DNA of 64,000 bases from Camelus ferus (lineage: Eukaryota), in NCBI RefSeq assembly GCF_009834535.1, contig NC_045714.1:15252001-15316000 (forward strand). The letters run 5' to 3'. A program made the translations under genes and the position numbers. Positions 3,507-6,500 of this stretch are shown here, in pieces. Within the stretch, counting starts at the first letter, position 1. Each line of letters begins with the position of its first letter. A model generated the notes under the pieces. That model was not told the DNA's origin. It saw only the letters and a list, made by a program, of their open reading frames with translations, and ran no database searches.

Positions 3507-6500
3507 CTGAGGGAAGAGGCAGGTCCTTGTGGTGGGGATGCAGCCCACCCCCCCGGAGCGCCCCTGCCTGGACCGGGCAGCCTCACCGATGCCAGGGATG
3601 ATGCGGAAGAGATCGTTGACACGCTTGTCCACCGCCGTGGTGATGATCCTCACGCGTGGGAATGCGTAGGCCACCGAGTGGACACCCATCTCCGCCATGA
3701 GCAGCGACAGCAGGAAGATCTTGTCCTCAGGCACGTCGTGGTCCTGCGCAGCCAGGGAGTGAGCCCCGCCCAGCTGCTGCCCAGTCCCCCTCCCCCTCCG
3801 CCACTCACCAGGAGCACCCGCACCGCCATCATGGCCGCAGCGCCGGTGGACACGGTGCAGTCCATCAGGATAACGTGGTCATCGCTAATGTCCTTGGGGA
3901 GCCGCAGGTAGTGGAGCTGCGGGCGGCCACAGGGTCAGAGCCCAAACCAAAGGCCGCACCTTGGGCTGCCAGTGCCCCTACCCCCTTCTCTTCCCCGCCC
4001 CTGCCATGCCCTCATGCCCAGGACCACAACGCCTGTATGCGGCCCCACCTCGGGCTCCCCGGTGAGCTGGTTGGTCTGGATGAGAATGGTACCGATGCGC
4101 ACATCCTTGCACACGGCCCGCAGCGCGGGTTCCATGGTCTCTCCCGCCCGCAGGATGGACACACCTGTGATCTGGGGAGCACGGGGCTGAGCTGGCGGAC
4201 CACCCTTCTTGCCTCCCCAGACCCACCCCCAGGCTAAGCCGCTGGTACCTGCTTCCCGGCATAGCACTTGCCCGCGTAGTCTTGCCCTTGTGGGGTCTGA
4301 ACCACGCAGTCCTGCAACAGAGCGGAAGGAAGTGGTGAGCCTGGAGCGCACTCCCCCAACTCCCGGAGCCCCCAGCGCCTCCCGGCCCCTGCCTGCCGCA
4401 CACCTGGAAGGGCAGGAAGGAGAGTGCGTGCTCGATGAGCAGCCGCATCAACCTCTTGGAGTAGAAGATGAACTCATCACGGCTGGTCTCCTTGTCCCTG
4501 GGGGCCACCATGGGTTCAGCGAAGGGCCAGAGCCGCCCACCCCGCCCCGCAGGAGGGCCCTCACCTGATGATGGTGTGCATGCCCCGCACCTGCGGCGTG
4601 CTTTTGAGGACACTCAGCGTCCGGGGCAGGGGGTGGCACTGGTGCGCCGAGGCTAGCGCAGCCCTGGGGACACAGACCGATGGGGAACTCAAGAAGGTAT
4701 GTCTTCTCCCCAAGCCCCGTCCTCCCACTGTGGGCTGTGGGGGGTGATTGTGGTGGGAACAGCGGGTGTGTGGCTGGTCTGGAGGGAGGGCCCCACCCCG
4801 AGATGCCCTCCCCCTTAACAGCCAGGCAAAGGTTAAAGGACACAGTGGGAGACAGAGCAGCTGACCATTAGACAGAAAGCAGGGGCTGTGGTGTGAGCCT
4901 CCCCTCTCCACCGGGTCCAGATCCCCTCCTGCAGGACTTGGCAGTGGGAGGGCTCAGACGTCGGATGAACCTCAGCCCCCAAGATGGGCAGCTGGTCCCC
5001 ACCTCAGGACACCTCTCCCTGGGGAAACAGCTGAGCACTGGGGCCAAGCCCCACCTACCCCTTCCCCCCAGGTGATGCTTGAGCCCCTCAGGAAGGGGCA
5101 AAGCTGGCCTAGTGCCCCTGCTGCCAGGGCCTGGGGGGAGCAGGAGGAGGAGCTGGGGGTGGGGGGGAGGGGCCTGCAGGCGAGGCCAGGCACACAGCGC
5201 AGGGACAGGCAGGCGGCACCACGACCAGAGCACTCTGTCCTCACATATCCCAGCGCAGCTTCCTCTGCTCGCCAGGTGAAGAGATGAAGAGGAGGTTCGG
5301 GGAGGGAACAGGGCAGGAAACCCAAGGGTTTACAGAAAAGAGGAAAGAAGAAAGAGAAAAGACCATTCAGCAGGGAGCATCGGTGGTCCCCATGGCCACT
5401 GCCGGCCTGAGGAAGAGCAGAGCAGGTAGCAGGTGGCGGGGAGACGCCTCCAGCCTTCGCCCCAGTGGGCGCCAGCGAGCCGACACCACGCTGCCCAGCG
5501 GGCCCCCGCCCGCCCACCCGCCAGCACTTCCGGGGGCTGAGCGGGGCGGGTGGCCGCTGGTCACCACTTCCTTGGCTGACCAGAGAAAGGAAACTGAAGC
5601 TGGCTATGTGGAGGTGTTTTCTCGAGTTTGAAACCCTGGAAATTTTTTCTCAGAACAAAGGCTTCCAGAGGACCTGTTGTGACAAGACTTGCAAGTGCCC
5701 TGGTCTGGCGAGAGCTGAGCAGGGACTCATGCCAGGGCAGGTAGCTGGAGGGGCCGGCAACCGGCCTAGAGGCATTTCCAACACCGCACGAGCTCTGGGG
5801 CTCAGTCTGGCACTTTCCAAGTCCACAGAGGGTGCCGGCTGAGGGCAGGTCACTCATGCTGACCTCCGTGTGGGGACAGGTGCTCACCCGCCTCGTGGCA
5901 GGACGTAGATGCAGCCCCAGGGCTCCGAGGCCGCCCTGCCACCCACAGCTCCTCCTTGCCTCTGCGCCTCAGCTCCAGGGCCAGGGCGGCCAGGAGGCCT
6001 GTGGCTAGGGCCTCACCACCGCCTGGGGGAGTAAAGACTGGCCTCTCAGACCAAGTAGAGTTGCTGCAGACCCAGGCTCTCTGGCTACTGATAGACATGC
6101 CTGTGGCCACCACCCTGGGGACCCAGCAGTGCTGGCTCAGGGCAGCTGTGCCCTCAGGCCAGACCCCATACAACCAGCCCCAAGTTAGGCAAGAGCCTTC
6201 AAAGAGATCCCACCGGGCTAGGGTCAGGGTGCTATGTGACCTCAGGCAAGTCCCTTAACCTCCCTGGGCCTTAATTTCCTCAACTGCTGGCAAGGACAGG
6301 TGGAAGCAGTGGTGGAGGGGGTAGATGTGGTGGGAGGGGAACTGCCTGCCTGCCTGCCTGGGTGACAACCCAGACTCTGAGCTCCCTGTGGACGTTGGAA
6401 ATGCCTCTGTCCATGTGGACAGGTGTGGGAAGTCTTACCTGACACTGAGCTCACGCTGCGGCAGCAACACAGGGAGACACAAGGGAACGGGGCGGGCATC

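Follow-up and report, generated by a model that had tools for sequence, protein, structure and literature searches.

Several vertebrate exon pairs are mutually exclusive because the reading frame and nonsense-mediated decay (NMD) police them: the two exons are adjacent, their lengths are not multiples of three, and inclusion of both or of neither leads to a frameshift and a premature stop. Alpha-tropomyosin exon 3 is a PTB-repressed exon with a distant branch point and a long pyrimidine tract, and the combination of a distant branch point with a CU-rich tract is the architecture of exons often found under PTB-type repressors. Neural microexons that depend on SRRM4 (nSR100) are deeply conserved in vertebrates, preserve the frame, and have a UGC motif between the pyrimidine tract and the acceptor AG. 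For ATE1 exons 7a and 7b, long-range RNA bridges that control exon choice are described (10.1101/2020.06.04.134791).

The window, meaning the whole 64-kb stretch of DNA that was analysed, contains the mammalian UCKL1 gene on its minus strand; this region was read and its splice products were rebuilt by script. The exons in the window match UCKL1 proteins exactly. UCKL1 is a poorly characterised enzyme of pyrimidine salvage with an N-terminal uridine kinase domain and a C-terminal UPRT-like domain, and its orthologs carry PF00485 and PF14681. The initial annotation of this DNA had placed two microexons, here called A and B, between exons 7 and 9 (its numbering), and had described them as locked to the frame and mutually exclusive. 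The minus-strand reading and the rebuilt splice products agreed with every item of the proposed layout, including splice sites, phases and coordinates. The features of the interval are:

7065..7126, minus strand: UCKL1 exon 7, ending in phase 0 with CAG CTG GAG GAG (...CAGCTGGAGGAG) and followed by gtgagc
6439..6455, minus strand: microexon A, canonical, 17 nt, encoding RELSV+R; CGTGAGCTCAGTGTCAG between cag and gtaaga, strong sites
5270..5398, minus strand: AG-free zone of 129 nt with a CU-rich polypyrimidine tract, before exon B
5265..5270, minus strand: tandem acceptor GAG/CAG of exon B, of which the upstream AG adds CAG (Gln)
5245..5264, minus strand: microexon B, 20 nt, encoding RKLRWD+M, alternative to A; AGGAAGCTGCGCTGGGATAT between cag and gtgagg
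5239..5244, minus strand: exon B donor gtgagg, with a non-consensus U at exon position -1
4565..4663, minus strand: exon 9, starting with G, ending with AG and preceded by ccccag

Exon 7 codes for the end of the last helix of the kinase domain. Exons A and B both have GT-AG sites and, at 17 and 20 nt, both belong to the microexons (27 nt or less, frame kept).

Translation of the rebuilt products by script showed that the frame stays open when either exon A or exon B is included alone. With both exons, translation runs into RELSVRGSCAGIWLR*, where the stop (TAG, 4655-4653) lies inside exon 9, 88 nt upstream of its donor and with further junctions downstream; with neither exon, the frame is shifted (EEGCASLG...). 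Since the lengths of A and B are each 2 mod 3, a productive mRNA must hold exactly one of them. Transcripts with both or neither would encode a truncated product and would probably be removed by NMD. The two exons are neighbours in the order 7-A-B-9 in the window and in ten other species, and full-length annotated proteins carry either A or B. Indirect support for exclusive use in transcripts comes from a curated RefSeq isoform, Gnomon models and Logan fragments. The A-B intron measures 546-2286 nt across species, which excludes steric interference, and the frame rule together with NMD is the sole exclusivity mechanism with direct support. Non-productive models are annotated as well, with both exons (P0298, P0309) or with neither (P0021, P0055, P0056, P0078), indicating that exclusivity is enforced on the product and is not absolute at the splicing step. 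Frames, annotated proteins and conserved DNA all support the exclusive pair that the initial annotation had proposed. Very probably, A and B are thus best explained as an ancient, frame-policed pair of alternative coding microexons with a swapped linker, in which the use of exon B may be regulated.

The pair is not new as a discovery, as public genome annotation already carries it. An RKLRWD variant had been suspected to be known, and RKLRWDM is indeed contained in the curated human RefSeq protein NP_001340405.1 (UCKL1 isoform 4), with RKLRWD forms in many further vertebrate models. Among all fetched UCKL1 proteins, the linker was of A-type (RELSVR or REITVR) in 327 and of B-type in 181, many of the latter being automatic Gnomon models. 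The hits of window exon 6 among protein representatives were fragments and models of UCKL1, some of which join A to the acceptor of B and run into the intron (beluga P0013, siamang P0036), while others skip A. A regional search with gibbon UCKL1 gave 120 clusters, all with RELSVR, and the B form was seen among the members of larger clusters. Mammals with B-type models include apes (bonobo among them), gibbons, horse, pangolin, flying fox (a bat), sheep, orca, deer mouse, naked mole-rat and marsupials; sheep and orca have the variant RKLRWDL, and a ground squirrel has RELRWDM. Outside mammals, exon A encodes REITVR from elephant shark to birds, and the peptides encoded by exon B are:

RKLRWDM: salmonids, pike
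RKLRWDI: cyprinids (including zebrafish X1), gar, bichirs, sturgeon, paddlefish, salamanders, turtles
RKMRWDI: cichlids
RKLRWDV: caecilians
RKLRWHI: lizards, geckos

In the human cluster, the run-assembly fragments were of A-type on ~30 contigs and of B-type on one, a crude hint that exon B may be the minor form. A zebrafish phosphoproteome paper lists the B-type model XP_021324336.1, which is a database label and not isoform-specific evidence. Another public model, P0018 (793 aa), reads through introns of the window, and parts of it equal the translated intron sequence of 6747-7397; it is a wrong prediction of UCKL1, probably made from this or a closely related genome.

Orthologous loci were fetched for sheep, Tasmanian devil, deer mouse (Peromyscus), dugong, shrew, softshell turtle, garter snake, ostrich, gar and zebrafish by way of X1-type (longest-isoform) proteins, and exons 7, A, B and 9 were located in each. 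Their order is identical to that of the window throughout, and exon A was located in all ten species. The pattern AG+AGGAARCTNCGYTGGSATNT+GTGAG has exactly one match in every orthologous locus except that of ostrich, where it is missing; this makes 10 of 11 loci, with two from sheep, and nine of ten species. The conservation by which the initial annotation proposed to judge exon B was thereby established, the 20-mer and its splice sites being kept from gar and zebrafish to mammals. The pair is present in ray-finned fishes, amphibians, turtles, squamates, marsupials and placentals, and because both exons occur in the same order in ray-finned fishes and tetrapods, it is at least as old as their common ancestor.

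In a nine-species alignment of 270 nt around exon B, mean column identity was 47%, and all 19 invariant columns fell in the acceptor, the exon or the donor; the donor GTGAG was invariant. Within the exon, the sites that vary are 6, 9 and 12, where the codons for Lys, Leu and Arg have their wobble bases. There are two exceptions: G16C (Asp to His) in the snake, a change that the lizard proteins share, and position 19, which belongs to the split last codon (Met, Leu or Val, and Ile where exon 9 starts with A). RKLRWH in place of RKLRWD was found in the garter snake locus (L008, 7040-7059) and in lizard and gecko proteins (P0670, P0694, P0696, P0697, P0700), and is a lineage-wide squamate replacement of an otherwise invariant Asp. 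The changes in exon B would alter the peptide in both other frames. Judged from the A+B frame, the window differs from the human models by two synonymous changes in this exon. The wobble-site changes are silent in the RKLRWD frame, and the A+B frame does not encode a constant peptide (the window has GSCAGI where the models from human and siamang have GSYVGI), which together demonstrate selection on the RKLRWD frame.

These patterns bear directly on a different role for exon B, namely that it acts mainly as a poison exon, which is included together with A, introduces a premature stop and lowers UCKL1 output via NMD, so that the B-only mRNA would be a by-product. The translation of the A+B product in the window is as this explanation predicts, A+B forms have been annotated or assembled (P0298 and the Logan run-assembly fragment P0309), and several models use the acceptor of B and then run into the intron (P0013 from beluga, P0036 from siamang, and P0053). 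However, a poison exon does not need a conserved peptide, and substitutions over more than 400 My have fallen mostly at wobble positions of the RKLRWD frame; the A+B peptide differs from species to species, and the form curated by RefSeq is moreover the B-only form. We therefore regard a predominantly poison function as highly improbable.

Between 7064 and 4664 there are 138 AG..GT pseudo-exons of 5-59 nt that are open and keep the frame, so frame compatibility by itself means little and the decisive evidence is comparative. A GTRAG donor occurs in only a few of the 138, and exon B has by far the longest AG-free zone. The 27-nt pattern AG+exon B+GTGAG matches once in the 64-kb window against 0.00 matches expected. 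That exon B is a chance pseudo-exon, as these many candidates might suggest, or an annotation artefact spread by homology-based gene prediction, as the preponderance of automatic models among B-type proteins might, has a negligible probability and is refuted by that match count, by the nine-species alignment and by the 27-nt element itself, which recurs at its place in 10 of 11 vertebrate loci while the intron around it cannot be aligned. Neither the restriction of variation to wobble sites nor the conservation of the AG-free zone depends on annotation.

For the coding pair, the 3' end of the intron before exon B provides further information. The AG-free, pyrimidine-rich zone noted at 5398-5270 was measured at 129 nt and 73% pyrimidine, and zones of 78-129 nt occur in all ten species with an intact exon B. 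Within the last 120 nt upstream of B, the window has seven UCUU and four CUCU motifs, and upstream of A it has none; the AG-free zone with its CU-rich motifs is conserved before B and not before A. Such a long AG-free zone implies a distant branch point, and the architecture suggests that the use of exon B is regulated and not constitutive. By its motif content (CU-rich tract, UCUU/CUCU motifs, distant branch point), exon B resembles PTB-regulated exons, and PTB may control it. The donor of exon B is weak at exon position -1. The last ~30 nt before the AG of exon B contain no UGC motif in any of the ten species that have the exon intact, the window included, and assignment to the SRRM4-dependent neural microexons was accordingly rejected; downstream of B, no conserved GCAUG (RBFOX) motif was detected.

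The GAGCAG at 5270-5265 makes the acceptor of exon B one of the NAGNAG class, and the additional Gln that had been considered possible is annotated in isoforms P0278 and P0300. GAGCAG is also found at this position in Peromyscus, shrew and devil, and AAGCAG in dugong, while NAGCAG is absent in sheep and in the non-mammals. The tandem acceptor is restricted to therian mammals and has been lost in sheep. Elsewhere in the gene, 547/548-aa isoform pairs such as P0159 and P0163 differ by a single Ser at the N-terminal EDR(S)NAESLD junction (window ~9500-9630), which is consistent with another tandem acceptor.

In ostrich, a copy of exon B is still recognizable (L006, 3911-3936, CTGAAGCTTTGGTGGGACAT between ctgg and gtgagc). 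With its acceptor AG missing and two residues replaced, the exon appears decayed, and the AG-free zone upstream measures only 24 nt. No B-type linker was seen among the bird UCKL1 proteins read, and exon B may have been lost in birds, judging from these proteins and the one bird genome inspected. Many bird models have odd linkers (EKVRAALA, EKVSQGAALA, EKHLPPCRAALA; P0487-P0510, P0548, P0549, P0554, P0556), which look mis-predicted because the 17-nt exon A was missed.

A perfect 15-nt inverted repeat was found in the A-B intron, for which a rough calculation gives ~0.003 expected by chance in 2.4 kb. Its arms are:

6371..6413, minus strand: 5' arm of the duplex, starting ~26 nt after the exon A donor, with the core AGAGGCAUUUCCAAC at 6408-6394
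5763..5810, minus strand: 3' arm of the duplex, with the core GUUGGAAAUGCCUCU at 5782-5768, ending ~500 nt upstream of exon B

The extended duplex in the window comprises 36 bp (-48.8 kcal/mol) and closes both the minimum-energy and the centroid fold of a 691-nt segment. Homologous duplexes are present in sheep (-54 kcal/mol, z -5.2) and deer mouse (-51, z -7.3) when compared with shuffles, so that across the three mammals the duplex spans 32-37 bp with -49 to -54 kcal/mol; arms in other loci lie at ~8720-8762 and 9306-9344 (L001) and at ~10716-10762 and 11568-11617 (L009). Two compensatory changes were observed: the first pair of the core is A-U in the window and G-C in sheep and deer mouse, and an A-U pair of a second helix in the window is G-C in sheep. 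The Tasmanian devil has a 9-bp core and a different complementary second helix, which is not significant by energy alone. In dugong, shrew, turtle, snake, gar and zebrafish no such duplex was detected, and with so few species its conservation is suggestive only. Within the loop, at ~6230-6285 of the window on the minus strand, lies a sequence (..GGGACTTGCCTGAGGTCACATAGC..) that resembles a MIR SINE core.

It is conceivable, if rather doubtful, that this long-range RNA bridge partly sets the choice between A and B in many therian mammals. The bridge would loop out ~560 nt of the A-B intron and alter the effective distance or accessibility between the donor of A and the distant branch point of B, which would shift the balance of A-only, B-only and non-productive A+B mRNAs. 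If true, a choice set by the bridge would exchange a conserved R-x-x-S/T motif for a Trp-containing basic segment in the linker between the kinase and UPRT-like domains.

The position of this linker was derived from a PDB sequence search. Structures of UCK2 and UCK1 align to residues 93-300 of the 548-aa protein, and the matches to UPRT structures begin at 317-325 and end at 532; this search gave no entry that covers the two domains together. As the kinase match ends at 300, the A/B residues (303-309) directly follow the last kinase helix and form the first part of the inter-domain linker, in which the initial annotation had placed the swap. The choice between A and B exchanges six or seven residues there, and the UPRT-like domain begins ~15-20 residues further on. 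Exon A provides a conserved R-x-x-S/T motif (RELSVR, REITVR); exon B has none and adds Trp and basic residues. AlphaFold2 models of a B-type (horse, 538 aa) and an A-type protein (deer, 548 aa), each built with a 71-sequence ortholog alignment, were unreadable, with a mean pLDDT of 39 and 38, respectively, so that nothing on the linker can be taken from them. In the one biochemical study of UCKL-1 that was found, the protein was the A form of 548 aa, and isoforms were not separated (PMC9246348). A swap of 6-7 residues that has been kept for more than 400 million years at a domain hinge suggests that the two forms differ in some important property, candidates for which are activity, domain coupling, partner binding and phosphorylation.

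Two further observations were made in the window. An Arg-Gln insertion at the HSRKKDW/KTLYGAN junction (window 8221-8334) was found in none of the 375 UCKL1 proteins spanning it, of which 373 have no insertion and two are partial models with VG or VR; a 6-nt microexon at 8221-8334 is thus without annotation support. A run of 140 N is located at 26285-26424.

UCKL1 was not found in the supplements of two catalogues of mutually exclusive exons, nor in those of a neural splicing atlas and a catalogue of conserved base-pairing, although these files were possibly incomplete. Its absence from the mutually exclusive exon catalogues is probably due to exons that are too short and too dissimilar for the catalogue criteria. 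Full-text literature on UCKL1 splicing, isoforms, microexons, mutually exclusive exons and splicing factors gave no description of the A/B pair. A 2026 preprint mentions one skipped exon of UCKL1 as a difference between the immune cells of mouse and human, and leaves the exon unspecified. What is new here is how old the pair is, together with the conserved architecture of exon B, its apparent decay in ostrich and the candidate RNA bridge.

Compared with the systems described above, the window exon B is first of all the ortholog of the exon of human isoform 4: in NP_001340405.1 and many XP_ models the same exon at the same peptide junction replaces RELSVR, and there is no difference in kind. 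With SRRM4 microexons the UCKL1 pair shares its size class, deep vertebrate conservation and frame preservation; exon B differs from them by the absence, in every species examined, of UGC between the pyrimidine tract and the AG. The candidate bridge resembles those of ATE1 in being a stable duplex downstream of one exon and upstream of the other, but only one duplex was found here, with no established competing pair. Like PTB-repressed exons with a distant branch point, such as alpha-tropomyosin exon 3, exon B follows a long zone (78-129 nt) that lacks AG and is filled with UCUU and CUCU motifs; unlike in alpha-tropomyosin-type exons, an A-B intron of 546-2286 nt leaves no steric clash with the upstream exon. 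In its logic the pair resembles the frame-enforced vertebrate pairs, which are likewise adjacent, of lengths not divisible by three, and driven into a frameshift and premature stop by inclusion of both or neither. Unlike catalogued pairs, however, A and B differ in length (17 versus 20 nt) and have no significant similarity, and therefore do not represent a demonstrable tandem duplication: they share only R-[EK]-[LI] at the start, and the ~40% nucleotide identity seen by eye between the fish exons is not above chance for 17 nt. Among such pairs, that of UCKL1 offers a clean, testable example of a frame-policed microexon switch.
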